A stretch of DNA of 64,000 bases from positions 12,958,001-13,022,000 of the forward strand of contig NC_087257.1 of NCBI RefSeq assembly GCF_037042905.1. Direction: 5' to 3'. The DNA comes from Lytechinus pictus (lineage: Eukaryota). The translations under genes and the position numbers were made by a program. Below, piece after piece: positions 3,058 to 64,000 of this stretch. The notes beneath the pieces are model-generated. The model made no database searches. It saw only the letters and a list, made by a program, of their open reading frames with translations, and was not told the origin of the DNA. The stretch's first letter is position 1. Each line of letters begins with the position of its first letter.

Positions 3058-3460
3058 GGTTCATTTCCAATTCGTCTAATGCCAATTTGTCCAATTGCCA
3101 ACTCATCTACTATCATCTGGTCTACCATCAGTTCGTCCAATCCACATGGTCTAATTGCCAGTTTGTCCACTCACCAATGGTCTAATAACCAGTTGGTCCA
3201 ATAGCCATTTAGTCCATATACCATTTGGTTTAATTGTACTAAGTGTTAATTGGGTAAGATGAATGAAAAAAAAATTGGTTTCAGACGAACTGGTTATGAG
3301 ACGAAATGGTCACAGACGAAATGGTGATTAGACAAAGTGATTATTGGACCAAATGTTTATTGGACTAAATGGCTGTGATGGACAGAATGACATTAGACTA
3401 AATGAAGGTAGACCATGTGATGAGAGGATGAGTTGGCAATAGACGAATCGGCAATTTACC
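3058..3460. mobile_element. hAT-type MITE
   Basis: Imperfect TIRs (GGTWMATTKCCRATTCGTCTA) and exact 8-bp TSD CTTTATTG. Confidence 0.75.
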
Positions 3461-6400
3461 CTTTATTGTAGCTATCTATTTATGCAAGATCTTCAGTAGA
3501 TGTGAAATCAACCATGAAAATACAACATACACAGTCAATGTTAATAATGAAAAAAATCTACGTTTATTATAATATACCTAAGATAGCCACTTCAATTAAT
3601 TAACTGATCAAAAAGGGGCCCTGCATATTAACATGGCATCATATTATCACCCTTCACTGATCAAAATGATGAGCACCTACATTGTATAGCAAGAAGGCAG
3701 AAGGTCCCATTGTTTAAGTGTTTGTTATGAATCAACCACTGAGCTATTATGGCCGCTAATGGTACAATCAATTGTAGCTATTATTAATCTTATTTATGTA
3801 AACAGGTTATTCATAAAATATCAATTGTATCTTTGACATGTTACAACCCAAGATCTTATGTACGCTGCAAGTACAGGGCCATTTAACATGAGAATATGAA
3901 ATTGATAGTAAAATCAATTGTAACTATAAGTCTGTGGGGGTGTTCGTTGCAAGAAAATATGCAAGAAAATATTTGCAATCAATCGCAAATTTCGGATGAA
4001 AATTTACAAGAGAAAGATCAATTTAAAGAAAATCAATTCATATTTGTTGATGAAAGAAGCAGACCATCAATCAATTGTAAATTTGTAATGAAATAAATGA
4101 CTTTCAATTGAGTTTGGGACCTGAAATTGACTTGCGATCAATTGCAGGTTTCTTGCAACATCCCAAAGACAAACATGTACATGCAAGATGTAAAAATGTA
4201 ACAATCAAGTTTAAATGTCAATTGTATCTAATTCCATTACACCTAAAGATCTTAAGTAGAAAACTACTGTAACTTTAGGGCCCTGTAACAAAAATACCAT
4301 AATCAATATCAACTGTGTACGATCAATTACAATTGATTATAGATATTGATTGTAATGCTTCATGAAACAGGGCCCCAAAGAGACAATCAAAAGAACAAGG
4401 CTTTATAAGTAAACTCAATTTATTTAAAAACGATAATAGCTTAAATGGAAAGATAACCAAGTGCAGTCTACNNNNNNNNNNNNNNNNNNNNNNNNNNNNN
4501 NNNNNNNNNNNNNNNNNNNNNNNNNNNNNNNNNNNNNNNNNNNNNNNNNNNNNNNNNNNNNNNNNNNNNNNNNNNNNNNNNNNNNNNNNNNNNNNNNNNN
4601 NNNNNNNNNNNNNNNNNNNNNNNNNNNNNNNNNNNNNNNNNNNNNNNNNNNNNNNNNNNNNNNNNNNNNNNNNNNNNNNNNNNNNNNNNNNNNNNNNNNN
4701 NNNNNNNNNNNNNNNNNNNNNNNNNNNNNNNNNNNNNNNNNNNNNNNNNNNNNNNNNNNNNNNNNNNNNNNNNNNNNNNNNNNNNNNNNNNNNNNNNNNN
4801 NNNATTGGAGACAGAGAGATGTACTTGAGAGAGAGACAGCGAGAGAGAGATCTGAAATTAAATATTTATATAAAACAACCTTGATACTAATACTCATTAC
4901 ATTTGTAATCCACTCTAAACAGGCCATCCGAACAATAACCCCAAAAATCACCAAATTACACTGGTGATTCACGTCAGCATTTTTATTATGGCAGGCTACC
5001 CTCAATTTCAGTCTCAACCAACGGAATTGACCGCAGAAGCATTATCAAAGCACCTACATGTACATGTAATGGCCTCAGGGATTATTCTCTACTCATATGG
5101 ATAGAATTGACTTCATTGCCTAATTTTTTCTCCTAGCCACCCTTCCTTTCCACCACATCTAATTCCAACAACCAATAAACAATATACTACCGTGCGGCTC
5201 CGTTTTACCAATATACGATAATGGGGCCCAGTAACGGTGTGTGTGTACAAATTAAAGCTTGGCGGTCATTGATTACGACCGAACTAAAGGTCAAGCTTTC
5301 GATTTTTTGGCGGCCAAAACACGTCAGGCCTCGGCTGCAGGTGAGGGTCTTTAATACCCGATTTGCATATTTCGTGGGCGGCGGATTACCGTAGGTGGCA
5401 AATAATTGTAGATGGCAAATAATCGTAGGTGACAGATTATAGCGGAATTGGTGCAGATAATAAGATATGAATAAGGCTAACAAACATGTACTGGGATTTT
5501 TCATACATGTACATGTATGGGAAAGGAAAACAGGAGTAGAAAATGCTGATATACATGTATGTAGCTTCACAGATAAAAAATGGACTGTTTTCAATATGGG
5601 AATTTAGTCTAGCTAGTAAAGTCTATGGTGCTAAAATTTTACAAACCCTGTGAGAGGAGTCCTTTGAATATGTCAGAATATTATCCAATCATAAAAAAAC
5701 CTTACATATCAGATAAAGCTGATTTTATGAACCTCAAGAAAGGAGTCAACTACAAACGTCAGAAAGTTTTATATTTGTCAAATCAACCCTTATGGAAAGA
5801 ACTGTGTCACACAGTGTGATCACAGTGTGATCACAGTGTGTTCACAGTGTGGACTATGTGAAAATATTATTCACACTGTTTCAATGCTCAAATTCAACAG
5901 TATGAAGATATTTTCACACTGTGGACACCTCGACAGTGCGGCTGCTCACAGCATGTTCATATGGTCGACTATGTGAATATGTGATTCACACGGTTGAAAT
6001 GCTCAAAATTGAACAGTGTGGAGTTGAATTAACATTGTGTTCCACACTGTGAACTAAAATAGTGTGAACGCACTGTGGTACACACTGTGGGGCACTGTGT
6101 TCTTTCCAGTAGAAAAATAAACTAACAAAAAACACAAAGCGTTTTCTTTACTGATGACCTACATGAAACGGTCTCCAAGATGAACATGTCATCTGTCAAG
6201 TTATCAGATCTTTCCTTGATTCTTATTGACTCAGAAGCGCAGGTGTCTGACTGTTATGAACTTATGATGGTCACTGTCAGATGAAACAACTTTGTCAGAT
6301 AAAATGTCTGACAAGCCCTCTCATGACACACTTCCCTAAATTAAACTTCATGGGTGATATCCTGATAGGCATGGTTTAATTAACCCTGGAATAACTTAAA

Positions 6401-7188
6401 CCCAGCGCACACTACACAATCCGCTGTATTACAATAATTTAATAAATAGCATTTTGCATTAAATGTGAAGGTTCCAAGAAGTAAAATTATTTTACTTAAA
6501 GTTCGGCATTATGTTTATAGGAATAATAAAATCATAATTTTGCTTTGCAGCAAGCCCTGTGGTTGGAGTGAAGTCCAAATCGGCTTCAAGTCGCAGCCAA
6601 TGATGAAGTCAATAGGATTCGAAATTGAAACTGCTTTTATTCTTAAAAAGAGGCCTGAACTAGACTTAATTTCGATTTCAGTAGTCCTACCACTATTCTG
6701 AAATCTGATCACTGATATCTTATCGGTTGGAATTACAATTTCTTTTAAATTTGGATCACAACGAGTTGCATAGTGTGCACCAGGTTTTGGACCACACTTT
6801 TATGGAGTGCCATATGTCGACTTATCCATAAAGTAAAAATTATTCTAATCCTGCGGTAAGAAGTTGTCAAAAATGTAATTGTATCATAAAATGAAAATAA
6901 GAAAATACAAAAATATAATGAATCAAACACAATATCTTTGTCATGAAAGGCATATAATGGAAATATGTGGAAATGTATAATGAAAAAGTATTATTAAAAC
7001 CGGCAGTCTATAGAACTGTGGTCTAACATTATAATTTTAGATAGGGTTAGACCAAGGTTTCTTATTCAAAGTACATGTACCACCCCATATCTTTATGCCA
7101 ACAGGTCGGTAATCCATGGATACTGGTAGAAATACCTGTACCTATTTCATTCTCTACAAAATGGGGATTTTTTTTTTTTTTTACTCAC

Positions 7189-7236
7189 CTTCTATACAAT
7201 CTTCAGATTCTTTACATACTTCACTGAAGTGGCAAC
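7189..7236 (-). CDS. PTPRN: IA-2/phogrin-family PTP, coding exon 2 (GCHFSEVCKESEDCIE)
   Basis: 48-nt phase1-1 exon with TTTTTTTGCAG acceptor and GTGAGT donor. Cys spacing resembles the RESP18-homology region of IA-2 as I recall it (GCLFDRRLCSHLEVCIQD). Confidence 0.85.
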
Positions 7237-7609
7237 CTGCAAAAAAAGGGGACAAAAGTGAAATTGTAAATTATCATGAAATATAATCAATAAATTATGG
7301 ACAACATAAACATTTCGTTAGGAAAATTTGATTAAGATAAATATATTAAATCAGTCCATGTAAATTTTTTTCTTACAATATTCAGGACTTCTTTGTTGTC
7401 TTAATCACATCATCTTAATTGTATGCCTGTTTAGAAGAATATTCATACTGTATACGAAAAGTATTTTATTTCTGGTTCGAATATATGCATCATACACATA
7501 TATTATTATATACCACCCTTTGATAGTTTGATACTACAATGGGCAACATTCATGTCGTTAGAATTGTAACGAAAATGATTTTATCCTCCCCAACATCATC
7601 ATATAGCTA

Positions 7610-53817: not shown

Positions 53818-54444
53818 ATGAACGACATTCAAACACAAACGGGATGTAAAATTGAGTACAGAATTATCTCTGCAAGTGGAAGGGTGTACACTAATATGAC
53901 AGCTGAAACTAGAACTGGCACCCAAACTACAGAAGTCGCTCCCGCACTTTGCCCCCAGCCCCTATTACTCACATTCTTTCAACCTTCTGTATAACTTTGT
54001 CCTCCCACACCCCTTCAACCCCAGTGCCCCTTCAACCCACAATACCCCTTCAACATCCCTCCTCAATCAAGAAAGGACAAATTTATCACATTCAGGACAC
54101 CAACCACGTGATTTCGCCAGGCAGCGACAACGACAGTTACACATAATCTCCCAGGAAAAAGAACGTGCCTCTCACTAAAGACCCCACCTCCAAGGACAAG
54201 GACAAATCGCTGCCGAGTTTGTAATTTACTCTATGACTCGGAAGAGGAATTGGATTTTTGCCATAAGCACGGCGTAAGGGGGAAATGGATCGGTTGCGAG
54301 TATAAAGAAGGCCTTAATGACAAGCTTTGTGATTACTGGGCACATATAACTTGTTCAGGTATACCTATTAAAACGCAAAGAGACCTAAAAAACTACACGT
54401 TCTTTTGCCCAAATCATAATCATGATGATGCGAAGGAGATATAA
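53818..54444 (+). pseudogene. Degenerate chromodomain-like (NYLCKWKG) and PHD-finger-like (CRVC..WIGC..CDYWAHITC..FFCPNH) fragment, probably TE-derived
   Basis: PHD-like frame is open at 54112-54444; the chromo-like part has stops. Confidence 0.5.
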
Positions 54445-55719: not shown

Positions 55720-56746
55720 GGCCCCGTTGCATAAAACTTTTGCCGGAGTTTTTTACGGCAAAAAATCAGGAAACTACGGCAAAAAAAAATTGCCGGAGTT
55801 TTCCATTGCATAAAACTTTGCCGGAGTTTTATACGGCAAAACTTTTAAAAAACTCCGGCAAATCAAGTGGGTTTTTGCCGTAGCTTCTGTACCAACGGCA
55901 AAGTCCTAAAAACTCCGGCAAAGTAGTTTCAAGATGGCTGCTTTATTGTATGCCATACAGCAGGCAGCTGCCTTGAGACGGGAGCGAGTCTTTAGAGATC
56001 GAACGCATCCCTTGGATATCTATGACGACAGCGAGATGCTGAAGTTGTATAGATTCTCCAGACAGGGATGCGTTCATGTCATTAACAGACTCACTCCCCA
56101 TATCGAGCATCCAACGAGAAGAAATTTTGCTCTACCTGCAAGCTTGCAAGTATTTATCACCTTACAATATTTTGCGACCGGATCCATGCTTACGAACACC
56201 AGTGTAATACATGGAATACATCTGTCAACAGCATCAAGGACGATACGGAGAGTGACCTTAGCCTTGTATCAGCTAAGAAATGAGGTAATTACAGATAATT
56301 TCATCTATTTGATAATTATTAGGGCCTATTTTAAGGTCATCATGGATGAAGGAAAGTTATTGAAATTTCTGTGACTCTCAACACTGCAATTCTCAAAGAT
56401 TATTATTATCGTATCGAGCTTGAAATGTCTAACTTAGGCCTAACATATAACTTAGTAGTAGATCTATACTATATAAGACTTAGATCCAACATATTTCTAA
56501 AAAAAAAAAGGGTTATAAATGATGCCATGAAGCTGTTTTAAGTCTTCAAATTACTTGATTGAAGTTGAACTTCGTGCCCTTTTATTTTTTTTGTTACCAT
56601 GGCCACAGACGATCATTAAAAAGTTTGCCAGAGTTTTTTTGCCATGAAATTTTGACCGAATTTGAAACTCTGGCAAAAACTAAGGTTTTCGCCATAGAAA
56701 AACTATGGCAAAAATAAGTCTGGCAAAAGTTTTATGCAACGGGGCC
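55720..56746 (+). mobile_element. Internally deleted PIF/Harbinger transposon
   Basis: Perfect TIR GGCCCCGTTGCATAAAACTTTTGCC, CTG TSD, subterminal TTTGCCGGAGTTTT repeats. Confidence 0.9.
55934..56284 (+). pseudogene. Harbinger (HARBI1-like) transposase, first exon only
   Basis: RVFRDRTHPLD..YRFSR..LQYFATGS..STASRTIRRVT HTH region ending at a GAG|GTAATT donor; DDE core absent. Confidence 0.85.
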
Positions 56747-58189: not shown

Positions 58190-58980
58190 TCAGATGTGGT
58201 GAACAAACTTCAACGGCCTCTCACCAGGTGCTTTGAAGGTTTGAGACAAGATGAGATGTCTGCAGCAACAACCATCTTGGACACCAGTCAGTGGCCACAA
58301 AGAGGGAGGAATTGGAGCCATATGGGAACACCTCAGCTGACTTCGCATGTAGGCACTTCGCTACAATCTTGCAGCATCACATGTGTCAGCTGGAGAAAGT
58401 AATGTATGTAATGGTGTCTGCCACCACAACCATCTTGGACACCAGTCAGTGGCCACAAACGAAGGGGGGAACTGGAGCCATATGGGAACACCTCAGTTGA
58501 TGTCGCATGTAGGCACTTCGCTACAATCTTGCAGCATCATATTCAGCTGGAGAAAGTTATGTATGTAATGGTGTCTGCCTCCACAACCATCTTGGACACC
58601 AGTCAGTGGCCACAAATGAAGGGAGGAATTGGAGTAATAGGGGAACACGTCGTTTGACTTCTTATGTAGGCACTTCGCTACAATCTTGCAGCATCACAAG
58701 TTTCAGCTGGAGAACGTCATGTATGAGTCGCAGGAGGCTAAAATCTATCAGGTCTCCCAAGGCCAAGGCAGGAGAGTGCATGGAAGGACATCATGATGGA
58801 TGAGGAACTGAAGGCAAAGATACCCAACTTGCTACACATCGTGGAGATCCTGTTTGTCCTTCTTATCTCGACTGCTGCATGTGAAAGGGGCTTCAGCTGC
58901 ATGAAGAGAGTGAAGTCAGACTGGCGTTCTTCTTTGAAGGTCGACATGCTATCCAAGTTAATGTCTGTCTTGCTCCTCAG
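58190..58980 (+). pseudogene. hAT transposase C-terminal fragment (dimerisation domain)
   Basis: PNLLHIVEILFVLLISTAACERGFSCMKRVKSDWRSSL motif. Confidence 0.85.
58257..58725 (+). repeat. Tandem triplication, ~158-bp unit, inside the hAT fragment
   Basis: ACCATCTTGGACACCAGTCAGTGGCCACAAA at 58271, 58429 and 58586. Confidence 0.9.
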
Positions 58981-59099
58981 AATCATCACTAGGAGCAACT
59001 TTAACCAAAACGATTAGAGCAAAGTTTATTTATGTTGTGGACATTTCACCTTAGAACAGTTCAATGAAAACCAGCTCATGATGTGTCAAAATAAGTTCA

Positions 59100-59660
59100 G
59101 AAGTCGCCCCCATATTCTGAAGTTGGATTTAAATCAAATCTCGGTCTACATGTAAGTCTGATTTAATACATTTCAAAATCTCACTTTAGACCGCGGGTTT
59201 TGGAATTCCATTTCTGAAGTACGGTCTAACTTTAAACCCTGGTCAAAGTGGAGTCTAACTTGTGTGAAATTTAGACTGCGCCATGGCGTAGTTTAACTTT
59301 CAAAGATGGCCGATCTACTTGCTGCCTTGCGGCGGGGAGAGCAAATGCTCATGCTGAATAATCGGAGACAAGAAGAAGAGATAGAGCGGCCGTTGGTAGA
59401 AAGAAAGAAAAAAATCATATTTACAAGAACCACAAATTTCTGCATCAGTACCGATTGACCAAGGAAACTGGTTTGCATTCTGAAGTCAGGTCTCATTTAG
59501 ACCATGATATAAGTTAGACTAGAGTCTAACGGATCCACACTTAGACCGCAGGTCCAGTCTAACTCCAGTTTAGCGCGATTTGTGTTTCTGAAACTTCATT
59601 TTAATTAAACGCCGGGTTTAGGCGTAGTCCAACTTTAACCCATGGTCTAAAGGTAGACCA
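59100..59660 (+). mobile_element. Degenerate Harbinger-like element with transposase N-terminal remnant (ATG 59307)
   Basis: TAGACC/GGTCTA subterminal repeats; AAGATGGC start context as at 55934; QYRLTKE motif. Confidence 0.4.
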
Positions 59661-59837
59661 CAGGTACAAGTTGGTGGTCGTGGTGTTAGTGGATTACTTC
59701 GCATGTGCAATTGAAGCAGAAATTTGGTCTGCTTCTATTGCACATGCGCAGTAAATACAGGCTTCTTTGAATTGTGATAATCTTCTGCTACTCGAGATAA
59801 ATTCCTTCAACAAATAAGTTACAATATCCAAATAACC

Positions 59838-60761
59838 ATGGAGGAAAGTCACAAGAAAGCCAGGAAAAGAAACTGGGACAGCACGGAAAAAACCCTCCTC
59901 GTTCACCTCGTTGGTGATAAAATAGATATTATCGAAAAGAAGAGAAACGATTTCCCGGCCAACTCTGCCAAAATCAGGGCCTGGGAGGAAATCTTCAGTG
60001 AATTTCGGGCCCGGTATGGAGAGAGGAGGAGCATGAAAGAAATACGAGATCAATGGAAAAGGATAAAGCTCGCGGGGAAGGCTGAATGGACCGACTTCTC
60101 CAAAAAGAGGAGGATGACGGGAGGAGGAGAGCCACCCCAGCAACCCTCGGACCTCTCTGTCGTTCTGCGGGACATGGTCCCAAATGAGTTTGCGCAGATA
60201 CTCAACGAGTACGATGATGATGCAGGCATTGCCCGTCAGAACGACGATGCAGTGTATGCATTCGAGTACCTTGCAGGAATGCTGCCAGTGTTGGAGAAGG
60301 AAGAATGGACAAAGTACACGAAGAAGAGGAACAGCCGAAGGAATTCTGTCCGTGTATTCGGAATCCCAGAGAAGAAAGGAGAAGATACTGACCAACTCCT
60401 CATCAAGGCAGTGTCTGATGATCTTCCCTGCCCAATCTCTTCTGCTAACATCGATCATTCCCATCGATCAGGGAGGCCAAGAGCTGATTCAAAGAAGCCC
60501 CGCCCCATCCTGGTCAAGTTAACCCACTACAGGAAAAAGGCGGCCCTGATGAAGGATAGACATCAACTCAAAGGATCAGGCATATCCATCCAGGACTTGA
60601 CGAAAGCAAATCATCGGATCCTCTTGAAACTTTCTAACCATCCGAAGGTTGAGGCTGCCTGGACAGTCGATGGAAGAATCATGGCCGCCTTGAAGATGAA
60701 TGAGGAGGGGATTTCTATAAAGAGAGGTGTAACTTCCCTTCAAGAAGTTTCAACATTATAA
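59838..60761 (+). CDS. Chimeric Myb/SANT-like DNA-binding domain + LINE ORF1p RRM/CTD protein, array copy 1 (307 aa, intact)
   Basis: N-terminus RKRNWDSTEKTLLVHLV..KIRAWEEI..EIRDQWKRIK..RRMTGGG; C-terminus SRRNSVRVFGIPE..IDHSHR..PRPILVKL..DLT..AWTVDGRI. Confidence 0.75.
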   Translation: MEESHKKARKRNWDSTEKTLLVHLVGDKIDIIEKKRNDFPANSAKIRAWEEIFSEFRARYGERRSMKEIRDQWKRIKLAGKAEWTDFSKKRRMTGGGEPPQQPSDLSVVLRDMVPNEFAQILNEYDDDAGIARQNDDAVYAFEYLAGMLPVLEKEEWTKYTKKRNSRRNSVRVFGIPEKKGEDTDQLLIKAVSDDLPCPISSANIDHSHRSGRPRADSKKPRPILVKLTHYRKKAALMKDRHQLKGSGISIQDLTKANHRILLKLSNHPKVEAAWTVDGRIMAALKMNEEGISIKRGVTSLQEVSTL

Positions 60762-61287
60762 ACTTTTCTATCAATCCAAGAGGTTTGAATTGAATCTATT
60801 GCTCACATTTGTTTTGCTCTTATTCTCTTTTTCTCTACATATACATGTAAGTACATTATTGTGTGATCAGGTATGATTATCATGTTTTCTGTATATATAC
60901 ACTATTTTTATTTTTTTTGTATCTCATGTTGTGTGTGCTGATGCGGCTGGTTTGTATGTGTGTACATGTATGTGGAGGTTCCTCAACAATTCCAATTGTT
61001 TACGTGTTTGCTTTGTGGCTTACATCCTGTAGATGAACTGCATCTCTATCTCTATCTACCACTGCTGAGGTCACAATGAAATAAATAAATATAAGAAAAT
61101 TGCTTTATTAAGAGAATACCAGCCGATTTCAGATTTTACAAATTAGCATAATAAATCAGTGGTAAATTTGAATAATTTTGGAGATCATAATGTGGGTCGC
61201 ATTCTTGCTTATATCCATTACAAGATCAATTACAAAATAGCCAAGTCAATTTTTGATTCAAACATATTAAATTTTAGGAACTGGCTT

Positions 61288-61623
61288 ATGGGAGCATCCA
61301 CAGACCAGATGAGAAAAATTGGTGTTATTTTTGCCTACAGTGATCCAATATCCCGTAAAAAGAATCCTCCGATTACGAAAAAGTGCCCCTATTGTGGTAC
61401 TTCAGTGCAGCGGTTGGACAACCACCTCCATACTGTGCACAACGTCCCACGAAAATCAGAGGAAATGGTCCAACAACTGAAGGCTGTGAAAAGAAACTGC
61501 ACAGACTTCTCCAAAAAGAGGAGGATGACGGGAGGAGGAGAGCCACCCCAGCAACCCTCAGACCTCTCCGTCCTTCTGCGCAGTAAAAAAATATTTTTGT
61601 GTTATGTTGATTTCTTCTTGTAA
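61288..61623 (+). other. Short ORF with a C2H2-like finger (CPYC-x8-NHLHTVH) fused to a duplicated Myb tail; repeated at 63109-63444
   Basis: ORF track plus nucleotide identity of 61504-61580 to 60093-60169. Confidence 0.5.
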
Positions 61624-61663
61624 ATTAGTTTTGTAATCGAAATAATTACAAGTTTCAATAACC

Positions 61664-62592
61664 ATGGAGGAAAGCCAAAAAAAAAAAAGGACAGGAAAAG
61701 AAACTGGGACAGTTCAGAAAAAACCCTCCTTGTTCACCTCGTTGGTAATAGAATAGACATAATAGAGGAGAAGAAAAACGATTTTCAGGCCAACTCGGCC
61801 AAAATCAGGGACTGGGAGGAAATCTTCGGTGAATTTCGGGCCTGGTATGGAGAGAGGAGGAGCATGAAAGAAATACGAGATCAATGGAAAAAGATAAAGC
61901 TTGCGGGGAAGGCTGAATGGACCGACTTCTCCAAAAAGAGGAGGATGACGGGAGGAGAGCCACCCCAGCAACCCTCGAACCTCTCCGTCGTTCTGCGGGA
62001 CATGGTCCCAAATGAGTTTGCGCAGATACTCAACGAGTACGATGATGATGCAGGCATTGCCCGTCAGAACGACGATGCAGTGTATGCATTCGAGTACCTT
62101 TCAGGAATGCTGCCAGTGTTGGAGAAGGGAGAACGGACAAAGTACACGAAGAAGAGGAACAGCCGGAGGAATTCTGTCCGTGTATTCGGAATCCCAGAGA
62201 AGAAAGGAGAAGATACTGACCAACTCCTCATCAAGGCAGTGTCTGATCATCTTCCCTGCCCAATCTCTTCTGCTAACATCGATCATTCCCATCGATCAGG
62301 GAGTCCAAGAGCTGATTCAAATAAGCCCCGCCCCATCCTGGTCAAGTTAACCCACTACAGGAAAAAGGCGGCCCTGATGAAGGATAGACGTCAACTCAAA
62401 GGATCAGGCATATCAATCCAGGAGGACTTGACGAAAGCAAATCATCAGATCCTCTTGAAACTCTCTAACCATCCGAAGGTTGAGGCTGCCTGGACAGTCG
62501 ATGGAAGAATCATGGCCGCCTTGAAGATGAATGAGGAGGGGATTTCTATAAAGAGAGGTGTAACTTCCCTTCAAGAAGTTTCAACATTATAA
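61664..62592 (+). pseudogene. Myb/SANT-LINE ORF1 chimera, copy 2 (poly-A frameshift near the start; 242-aa ORF from 61864)
   Basis: Near-identical to copy 1; an A12 run shifts the frame, which could be a sequencing error. Confidence 0.7.
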
Positions 62593-63484
62593 ACTTTTCT
62601 ATCAATCCAAGAGGTTTGAATTGAATCTATTGCTCACATTTGTTTTGCTCTTATTCTCTTTTTCTCTACATATTCATGTAAGTACATTATTGTGTGATCA
62701 TGTATGGTTATCATGTTTTCTGTATATATATACACTATTTTTATTTTTTTTGTATCTCATGTTGTGTGTGCTGATGCGGCTGGTTTGTATGTGTGTACAT
62801 GTACGTGGAGGTTCCTCAACAATTCCAATTGTTTACGTGTTTGCTTTGTGGCTTACATCCTCTAGATGAACTGCATCTCTATCGATCTACCGCTGCTGAG
62901 GTCACAATGAAATAAATAAATTGTTTAATTAAGAGAATACCAGCCGATTTCAGATTTTACAAATTAGCATAATAAATCAGTGGTAAATTTGAATAATTTT
63001 TGAGATCATAATGTGGGTCGCATTCTTGCTTATATCCATTACAAGATCAATTACAAAACAGCCAAGTTTATTTTTGATTCAAACATATTAAATTTTAGGA
63101 ACTAGCTTATGGGAGCATCCACAGACCAGATGAGAAAAATTTGTGTTATTTTTGCCTACAGTGATCCAATATCCCGTAAAAAGAATCCTCCGATTACGAA
63201 AAAGTGCCCCCATTGTGGTACTTCAGTGCAGCGGTTGGACAACCACCTCTATACTGTGCACAACGTCCCACGAAAATCAGAAGAAATGGTCCAACAACTG
63301 AAGGCTGCGAAAAGAAACTGCACAGACTTCTACAAAAAGAGGAGGATGACGGGAGGAGGAGAGCAACCCCAGCAACCCTTGGACCTCTCCGTCCTTCTGC
63401 GCAGTAAAAAAAGATTTTTGTGTTATGTTGATTTCTACTTGTAAATTAGTTTTGTAATCGAAATAATTACAAGTTTCAATAACC

Positions 63485-64000
63485 ATGGAGGAAAGCCAAA
63501 AAAAAAGGACAGGAAAAGAAACTGGGACAGTTCAGAAAAAAACCCTCCTTGTTCACCTCGTTGGTAATAGAATAGACATAATAGAGAAGAAGGAAAACGA
63601 TTTTCAGGCAAACTTGGCCAAAATCAGGGCCTGGGAGGAAATCTTCGGTGAATTTCGAGCCCGGTATGGAGAGAGGAGGAGCATAAAAGAAATACGAGAT
63701 CAATGGAAAAGGATAAAGCTCGCGGGGAAGGCTGAATGGACCGACTTCTCCAAAAAGAGGAGGATGACGGGAGAGCCACCCCAGCAACCCTCGGACCTCT
63801 CCGTCCATCTGCGGGACATGGTCCCAAATGAGTTCGCCCAGATTCTCAACGAGTACGATGACGATGCAGGCATTGCCCGTCAGAACGACGATGCAGTGTA
63901 TGCATTCGAGTACCTTGCAGGAATGCTGCCAGTGTTGGAGAAGGGAGAACGGACAAAGTACACGAAGAAGAGGAACAGCCGAAGGAATTTTGTCCGTGTA
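63485..64000 (+). CDS. Myb/SANT-LINE ORF1 chimera, copy 3 (open to window end)
   Basis: Compensating +2/+1 homopolymer indels keep 172 codons open. Confidence 0.65.
   Translation, partial: MEESQKKRTGKETGTVQKKTLLVHLVGNRIDIIEKKENDFQANLAKIRAWEEIFGEFRARYGERRSIKEIRDQWKRIKLAGKAEWTDFSKKRRMTGEPPQQPSDLSVHLRDMVPNEFAQILNEYDDDAGIARQNDDAVYAFEYLAGMLPVLEKGERTKYTKKRNSRRNFVRV

Follow-up and report, generated by a model that had tools for sequence, protein, structure and literature searches.

Organisation of the locus

The window analysed here comprises 64,000 nucleotides (nt) of the genome of Lytechinus pictus (assembly GCF_037042905.1, contig NC_087257.1, positions 12,958,001 to 13,022,000 of the forward strand), and positions are counted from its first letter. 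Towards its right end lies an uninterrupted open reading frame (ORF) of 307 codons (59838-60761, + strand) with the start context ACCATGG. It encodes a Myb/SANT DNA-binding domain followed by the C-terminal part of the ORF1 protein (ORF1p) of a long interspersed nuclear element (LINE), that is, an RNA recognition motif (RRM) and a C-terminal domain (CTD). A sequence-only reading of the window had reported the intact 307-aa frame, its start context and an AATAAA downstream, all of which are present (the latter at ~61079-61092). The ORF does not stand alone; it is the first of five tandemly arrayed units, the last of which lie beyond the end of the window. The 307-codon frame is too long to be a product of chance, and both halves come from identifiable coding sequences. 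The array represents a young, lineage-restricted chimeric gene family in L. pictus. An exact-sequence look-up of the ORF in public assemblies gave no record, and a search of PDB chain sequences with the ORF returned one chance match, to eL20 (E 0.43). The features of the locus are collected in Table 1.

Table 1. Features of the chimeric array and of the sequence upstream of it (UTR, untranslated region)
Feature	Position	Strand	Basis or remark
Chimeric ORF of unit 1, 307 aa, best-preserved copy	59838-60761	+	sequence, comparison of units
5' flank/5' UTR inherited with the Myb gene, upstream of unit 1 only	59467-59837	+	DNA homology to paralogue copies
Residues 1-153, stemming from the first exon of the Myb/SANT parent	59838-60297	+	Pfam, exon structure of the parent, model and fold matches
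Myb_DNA-bind_5 domain, residues 9-83	59862-60086	+	Pfam
Junction filler of ~31 nt, residues ~154-164 (KEEWTKYTKKR)	60298-60328	+	homology ends on both sides
LINE ORF1-derived RRM and CTD, residues 165-307	60329-60761	+	DNA identity to LINE, fold
3' UTR from the ORF1-ORF2 spacer of the LINE	60762-61030	+	LINE homology ends at about the ORF2 start
AATAAA repeats, candidate polyadenylation signals	61079-61092	+	sequence
Spacer ORF, one per unit	61159-61623	+	zinc-ribbon-like CxxC...HxxxH (CPYCG...HLHTVH) fused to a Myb duplicate
Unit 1	start 59831	+	ORF 59838-60761 intact
Unit 2	61657-63477	+	ATG out of frame through a poly-A run of varying length in codons 6-9
Unit 3 (protein P0001)	63478-64000 in the window	+	307 codons open; a shifted frame replaces the first Myb motif including its Trp
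Unit 4	start ~65147, beyond the window		5'-truncated; carries TGA
Unit 5	start 66721, beyond the window		stop in the ORF1 part
Truncated N-terminus of a Harbinger-type transposase	55934-56374	+	HTH_Tnp_4, E 8.8e-4, sub-threshold; 3.5 kb upstream
hAT dimerisation-domain fragment	58742-59014	+	E 4.3e-8
157-bp tandem repeat, 3 copies	58257-58725		sequence
PHD-like ORF	54112-54441	+	sub-threshold

The Myb/SANT half and its parent gene

Residues 9-83 match the Myb_DNA-bind_5 family (PF13873) over profile positions 1-75 of 78 with E 4.7e-13 (49.3 bits, cut-off 21.7). The full-length structural model is unreliable for residues 1-165, because combined Myb and ORF1 alignments set Myb rows against coiled coils, and the Myb half was modelled separately from 38 family members. 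This model of residues 1-166 has helices at 15-27, 39-60 and 66-92, with a predicted local distance difference test score (pLDDT) of 92-96 over residues 11-80. Its nearest neighbours among models of reviewed proteins are MYPOP, MSANTD4, NAIF1, FSBP, TSNARE1 and MSANTD3/1, each with a probability of 1.00, and the best matches among solved structures are the DNA-binding domains of Zeste and GT-1, with weak E-values and template modelling (TM) scores of 0.59-0.74 by target. The Myb/SANT-like N-terminal domain, recognised earlier from a few motifs, is thus confirmed by the Pfam match, by a confident model and by nearest structures of the MSANTD4/NAIF1 type. W49, W73 and T94-G97 are invariant or nearly so in the Myb family, and unit 1 keeps all of them.

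Sequence comparison showed that residues 1 to ~153 are 88-91% identical to the N-terminal ends (150-odd residues) of two proteins, P0002 of L. variegatus (LOC121429023, 452 aa) and P0003 of L. pictus (LOC129262055, 447 aa). Beyond the shared part, these proteins consist of Ser/Thr-rich repeats and a C-terminal coiled coil. The parent gene LOC129262055, located on C25, is of cellular type with several exons, and residues 1 to ~153 correspond to exon 1. Homology at the DNA level reaches ~360 nt upstream of the ATG, starting between 59464 and 59634 in comparisons with the copies on C25, C17, C12, C3 and C4. A near-perfect palindrome of ~55 nt (59694-59754) lies ~90 nt 5' of the Myb start codon; it is 84-97% conserved among at least 10 dispersed Myb copies (C4, C25, C17, C12, C3, C10, C16, C11, C18, C9), and thereby better than parts of the Myb coding sequence. 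The palindrome could be a promoter element or the remnant of a transposon end. Some of the Myb copies share truncation points, identical in C17 and C12 and identical in C16, C11, C18 and C9, as if they had been mobilised as fragments.

The domain of NAIF1 and TSNARE1 is derived from Myb-like proteins of Harbinger transposons, and at this level of the family a Harbinger origin of the unit-1 Myb domain would be expected as well. At the locus itself, the one hint of a Harbinger element is the truncated, sub-threshold transposase N-terminus listed in Table 1.

The LINE ORF1p half and its donor

Residues 165-307 share 76% identity with P0004 and 49-66% with most other homologues, the weakest being at ~31-35%. 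These ORF1 homologues of 174-327 aa (mostly ~250 aa) are composed of an N-terminal coiled coil and an RRM+CTD module. At the DNA level, the coding part together with the spacer that follows it is 83-85% identical to a LINE copy at C22:1880804-1881420; the genome harbours more than 100 ORF1 copies. The apparently intact element L042 (C1:43279001-43289000, minus strand, ~4.5-4.7 kb) has a 283-codon ORF1 frame (6572-7420) followed by an ORF2 (3204-6191) of 996 aa with Exo_endo_phos (E 3.5e-8) and RVT_1 (E 5.7e-36) domains. The donor-type LINE family was probably active recently, because L040, L041 and L042, located on three chromosomes, are 97-99% identical over ~4.5 kb. The ORF2 of L042 ends in '...LPIFKNSCRKYLFERL' and is devoid of a Cys-His motif, an ending that may be CR1/L2-like rather than L1-like.

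The Transposase_22 profile, which the sequence-only reading had proposed as a check on this half, found nothing: a Pfam search of the whole ORF assigned neither this nor any other family to the C-terminal half, even at E≤10. Five ORF1 proteins of the parental family (two translations from the same genome, P0004, P0012 and P0019) likewise matched neither Transposase_22 nor Tnp_22_dsRBD at E≤1, and gave only coiled-coil noise and sub-threshold matches to Baculo_FP. The AlphaFold2 model has a pLDDT of 80-96 over residues 168-307, and the top 12 Foldseek matches in the PDB are all human L1 ORF1p, among them 2ykp (E 4.5e-6), 2ldy (RRM-CTD, E 6.5e-4) and 2w7a (RRM, TM by target 0.69). A feature search of the ESM Atlas, with a top score of 0.85, placed Transposase_22 clusters among the neighbours at 0.76-0.83, which serve as leads only.

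Residues 165-307 are an ORF1p RRM+CTD both by descent and by fold. The earlier assignment is therefore borne out by homology to the ORF1 of a LINE with apurinic endonuclease and reverse transcriptase domains and by the predicted structure; as to the hallmarks on which it was based, the module is real, but 'EDLT' reads 'QDLT' in unit 1 and 'IDHSHR' has a His for an invariant Arg. The N-terminal region and the coiled coil of the parental ORF1p are absent, the LINE homology starting at residue 165, directly after the parental coiled coil, and the missing coiled coil had been noted correctly. Residues 112-164, which comprise the end of the Myb exon and the filler, are of low confidence in both models.

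The junction

The homology to the Myb exon ends at 60297, 5 nt 5' of the GT splice donor of the parent. LINE homology begins at 60329-60331, passes the ORF1 stop and the inter-ORF spacer, and ends at ~61030, which corresponds to the ORF2 start of the LINE. The captured piece is an internal LINE fragment truncated at both ends, with the last ~60% of ORF1 and the ORF1-ORF2 spacer. The filler resembles neither the LINE sequence immediately 5' of the LINE breakpoint (p 0.21) nor intron 1 of the parent (p 0.83) to a significant degree. A 5'-truncated insertion by target-primed reverse transcription was considered and rejected, as the fragment lacks both ends of the LINE and reaches no further than the ORF2 start. 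The simplest reading of the mechanism would be a join at the DNA level with filler, possibly after an insertion that was later deleted. A LINE ORF1 natively provided with a Myb N-terminus was rejected too, as the ORF1 of the donor starts with an ordinary N-terminal region followed by a coiled coil. As originally proposed, a Myb_DNA-bind_5 domain (NAIF1/MSANTD type) and a LINE ORF1p RRM+CTD are combined here in a true chimera.

The tandem array

Five head-to-tail units of ~1.83 kb each extend from ~59812 to the equivalent of 68396, and in the 812-Mb assembly the fusion architecture occurs at this locus only. Unit 1 is a mosaic: its 5' flank (59700-59837) shares 97% and its codons 1-24 share 95% identity with the dispersed Myb paralogue on C4, whereas the same flank is only 53-55% identical to that of units 2-5; from codon 84 on, the sequence is 97-99% identical to the other units. 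Unit 1 is thus the sole unit with the parental promoter-like flank. The truncation of unit 4 is due to recombination between two copies of an 83-nt internal repeat.

The spacer ORF present in each unit includes an 83-nt duplicate of Myb codons 84-111 (61498-61580). Its relatives elsewhere are only distant (54% identity on C5, 45-54% in a cluster on C2), and the idea that it belongs to a high-copy element that did the capturing was discarded, as it is found only in the array and in a few distant copies. At the right end of the array (equivalent of 68075-68410) the spacer ORF is followed by a splice-donor-like CAG/GT, and for this reason the ORF may represent an exon of a resident gene caught up in the duplication.

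RNA reads and the reality of the junction

In RNA sequencing (RNA-seq) data of L. pictus, 61 and 53 reads were placed from ~8 million records each, covering 59300-61650 at a depth of ~1-12. All placed reads share one orientation, their first mates lying on the + strand; in most stranded libraries the first mate is antisense to the RNA, and the signal would then be antisense to the ORF. The depth is alike upstream of the ORF (59300-59830), across the ORF and through the spacer, and no clustered read starts or ends, intron-like joints or poly(A) ends were seen in the 2.6 kb to which the reads were mapped. The reads that cross the filler carry G at 60301 and C at 60306, which is the state of units 2-5, whereas unit 1 is marked by A at 60301, T at 60306, G at 60420 and the lack of an additional AGG after 60591. 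These reads derive from the fusion, though mostly not from unit 1 in its reference form.

Further support for the junction comes from an independent 398-nt contig that bridges it. A probe of 93 nt was also used, in which every 31-mer overlaps the filler; such words occur in 8 samples from 2 further studies of L. pictus, and in none of the second organism searched. The junction is genuine, because the RNA reads, the contig and the 8 samples all carry it. Reads across the junction had been proposed earlier as a check, and both the RNA reads and the contig span the filler.

Two observations concern the same region. The RNA reads of two runs have 38 other letters in place of 72 nt of 3' UTR at 60874-60947; this replacement is no intron but a structural variant, either allelic or paralogous. 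On the strand opposite the Myb half lies an ORF of 256 codons (59694-60464, - strand), which is probably a by-product of the purine-rich sense strand and is noteworthy because the RNA-seq signal may be antisense.

Conservation and decay of the units

The T-G-G-G motif that is invariant in the Myb family is intact in unit 1 only; units 2 and 5 are one Gly codon short and unit 3 is two short. Part of the conserved Myb features (the Trp and the T-G-G-G set) is lost from units 2, 3 and 5. In the ORF1 part, 36 sites are conserved to at least 80% in 39 LINE ORF1 C-modules, and unit 1 keeps 30 of these. The invariant Arg of 'IDRSHR' is replaced by His in every unit, and unit 1 alone has lost the codon for the Glu that is invariant in 'IQEDLT'. 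None of the five units keeps all invariant features of both halves; three (2, 4 and 5) are disabled, and unit 3 has a scrambled Myb N-terminus. As a rough estimate, two open frames out of five at 1-6% inter-unit divergence are about what neutral decay would leave.

The ratio of non-synonymous to synonymous rates (ω) among the copies, a comparison proposed in the sequence-only reading, was calculated with each variable site among the units counted once. The ORF1-derived half has 2 synonymous and 7 non-synonymous sites and 1 stop (ω ~1.1-1.45) and is without detectable constraint. The answer for the Myb half is confounded, as discussed below.

Other fusions and known relatives

An exhaustive phmmer search of 1.84 billion representatives gave 4,766 matches, and among the best 150 of these both halves are present in P0001 (unit 3) only. 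P0034, P0041 and P0141 were considered as second fusions and rejected; they are ordinary Myb or ORF1p proteins with alignments stretched by coiled coils or low complexity. Among the annotated proteins of L. variegatus none has both halves, the annotated-protein search being a weak test, and no second species with the fusion was found by 31-mer or annotated-protein searches, both of them weak tests. A description of a Myb/SANT-ORF1p pairing was not found in the literature, and the earlier statement that no such fusion had been described holds for this pair. It does not hold for host-gene/L1 ORF1p fusions in general, of which several have been published from vertebrates: Lyosin (ORF1p-MYL4), L1-RFX5, NUP42-L1 and USP4-L1 (Kitao et al. 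2025, PMC12129022). These arise by exonisation and keep the coiled coil that is required for ORF1p trimerisation; Lyosin, which is without the CTD, is under purifying selection and expressed in testis (PMC12129022).

Similar to the vertebrate fusions, part of the protein described here is encoded by a LINE ORF1 segment and the rest by a non-LINE gene. The ORF1p part is C-terminal, as in NUP42-L1 and USP4-L1, and its partner is a DNA-binding protein, as in L1-RFX5. However, the vertebrate fusions are alternative exons joined by splicing, whereas unit 1 was joined at the DNA level inside one exon; they keep the coiled coil, whereas unit 1 has lost it and has the RRM+CTD. They are furthermore conserved across orders or classes, while the Myb-ORF1p array is seen in one species and is tandemly amplified, and Lyosin is set apart further by its purifying selection and testis expression. 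The Myb/SANT partner is different as well, and the donor is an echinoderm LINE that probably does not belong to the L1 clade. L1TD1, which presumably comprises a duplicated ORF1p, is also built from LINE ORF1p RNA-binding modules, but it is ancient, conserved, expressed and stand-alone, with no DNA-binding domain fused to it. It is the classic ORF1p-derived gene of mammals (PMC11925450).

Compared to LINE-1 ORF1p itself (2yko/2ykp/2ykq trimer, 2ldy, 2w7a), the folds of the RRM and CTD match, whereas the N-terminal region, the coiled coil and a downstream ORF2 are missing from unit 1. The unit-1 module shares no more than 14-21% identity with human ORF1p and departs from its own family at two invariant residues. 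On the other side of the junction, the parents P0002 and P0003 are organised like MSANTD4, with a Myb domain at the N-terminus and a coiled coil at the C-terminus; unlike the Myb_DNA-bind_5 proteins (MSANTD4, NAIF1, MYPOP, FSBP, TSNARE1), the fusion has lost the C-terminal coiled coil and the repeats of its parent. Chimeras of transposable element (TE)-derived ORF1p and host genes were thus already known, and what is new here is the Myb/SANT partner, the lack of a coiled coil and the echinoderm LINE as donor.

Origin and status of the chimeric family

We lean towards the view that the array is a by-product of sequence turnover in TE-rich DNA, i.e. a family of proto-genes or nascent pseudogenes on which selection acts little or not at all, and not an established domesticated regulator. 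The sequences show that an internal LINE fragment was joined at the DNA level to a Myb/SANT paralogue of the MSANTD4/NAIF1 type, where exon 1 ends, with ~31 nt of filler in between; the Ser/Thr-rich repeats and the C-terminal coiled coil of the parent were thereby swapped for the RNA-binding module of ORF1p. The ~1.83-kb unit with the fusion ORF was subsequently amplified to five tandem copies. Of these, unit 1 alone has the parental flank and an intact Myb domain, the rest being frame-shifted, truncated, stopped or scrambled at the N-terminus. Transcription of the array would be weak and perhaps due to read-through only. If translated, unit 1 would combine a sequence-specific DNA-binding head with a tail that binds single-stranded RNA; this tail could not assemble through a coiled coil as ORF1p does, and its RNA binding is expected to be weaker than that of the ORF1p trimer.

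Several findings weigh against so modest a status. Fusion-specific RNA exists. In unit 1 a frame of 307 codons is open, the promoter-like flank is conserved, the start context is good, and 30 of the 36 conserved ORF1 positions are kept. In the Myb half there are 14 synonymous and 15 non-synonymous sites among the units (ω 0.3-0.4, p 0.0015-0.012), and this synonymous excess could reflect purifying selection; the signal may also be inherited or confounded, because codons 1-83 of unit 1 stem from another paralogue lineage. Inter-unit variation is furthermore lower in the ORF1 half (~2-3%) than in the 3' UTR (~6%), which could be due to constraint or to homogenisation.

These observations lead to the first alternative, a functional newborn gene. 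The Myb-RRM/CTD protein of unit 1 would tether LINE or nascent RNA at Myb sites or act as a monomeric decoy for LINE RNA, with the other units being dosage copies or debris. Besides the frame with its parental 5' flank and palindrome, the Myb-half ω and the RNA-seq reads, this is favoured by a Myb domain above the Pfam threshold, by the confident folds of both halves and by precedent, namely selected host-ORF1p fusions (PMC12129022) and L1TD1 (PMC11925450). Against it stand the lack of constraint on the ORF1 half, with the invariant Arg changed to His throughout and the Glu deleted in unit 1, and the disabled state of 3/5 units. The RNA is weak, not bounded by the gene, mostly derived from other units, and antisense under the commonest stranded protocol. 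No orthologue was seen in the annotated proteome of the sister species, and the coiled coil needed for ORF1p trimerisation (PMC12129022) is gone. We regard this explanation as unlikely. The version in which unit 1 is a very young functional gene with its transposon-type Myb/SANT head on specific DNA and its RRM+CTD tail, devoid of a coiled coil, capturing LINE or nascent RNA, so as to regulate TEs or serve as a decoy, is quite unlikely; if true, it would be a hybrid of protein parts of DNA-transposon type and of a retrotransposon, observed while gene birth is at the stage of amplification. The 'newborn gene' of the sequence-only reading, with its role as TE regulator or decoy, found no support: three of five copies are disabled, ω of the ORF1 half is ~1, and the RNA is weak and continuous beyond the gene.

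According to a second alternative, the ORF was never independent, and the array lies inside a larger transcription unit (for example a host gene on one or the other strand, with the array among its introns or exons, or a long non-coding RNA), the RNA being read-through or antisense. The even depth over 59300-59830, the ORF and the spacer, the single orientation and the absence of clustered ends are consistent with this, as is the splice-donor-like sequence after the spacer ORF at the right end of the array. However, no spliced reads with intron-like ends occur in the 2.6 kb, no flanking exons were identified, and unit 1 has its own parental 5' flank. A larger transcription unit seems distinctly improbable to us as a separate explanation; it overlaps with the by-product view, because the latter already allows for read-through RNA.

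That the ORF belongs natively to a mobile element, either a LINE or a composite transposon with a Myb-first ORF, would fit the TE-related character of both halves and the dispersal of the Myb 5' region in at least 10 partial copies, but it is very improbable: the fusion is found at one locus in head-to-tail units and is not dispersed, no ORF2 follows it and the LINE homology stops at the ORF2 start, the more than 100 ORF1 copies, including intact elements, all have an ordinary N-terminal region and coiled coil, and the best 150 of the 4,766 phmmer matches yielded no second protein in which the two halves are joined. Tandem-repeat and TE-rich regions are prone to mis-assembly, yet an artefact joining unrelated sequences is hardly credible with filler-variant RNA reads and the 398-nt contig crossing the junction, the 8 samples from 2 other studies, and five diverged copies sharing the same junction.

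Known proteins with a LINE ORF1p component are very few; those published so far come from vertebrates without exception, and every one of them has the coiled coil. If the chimera is functional, the RRM+CTD of ORF1p would be reusable as a stand-alone RNA-binding module on a DNA-binding head, and the array would show a gene in the making, from capture through tandem amplification to differential decay, in a sea urchin that is genetically tractable and allows knock-outs. If it is non-functional, which we think likelier, the array would be a clean and datable case of how TE-rich regions yield intact-looking chimeric ORFs. It also calls for caution, as an open frame with two good domains does not prove a gene.

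Further observations on the two families

Seven equal-scoring matches to the Myb half were found on different chromosomes (C27:773467, C1:22879811, C2:23402428, C9:17063793, C8:14328471, C18:6277375 and C21:10848385), each with 37% identity over residues 7-134 in a frame of 171 codons; an eighth, at C3:76097285, has nearly the same score. Such a pattern points to a multicopy element with recent activity and a protein of the Myb_DNA-bind_5 type, possibly a live Harbinger family.

The ORF1 proteins P0004 and P0017 show sub-threshold matches to baculovirus FP domains 1 and 2 (E 0.0026 and 3.3e-4), and among the ESM Atlas neighbours Baculo_FP and Transposase_22 clusters are mixed. This hints at a distant kinship of FP25K-type proteins with LINE ORF1p.

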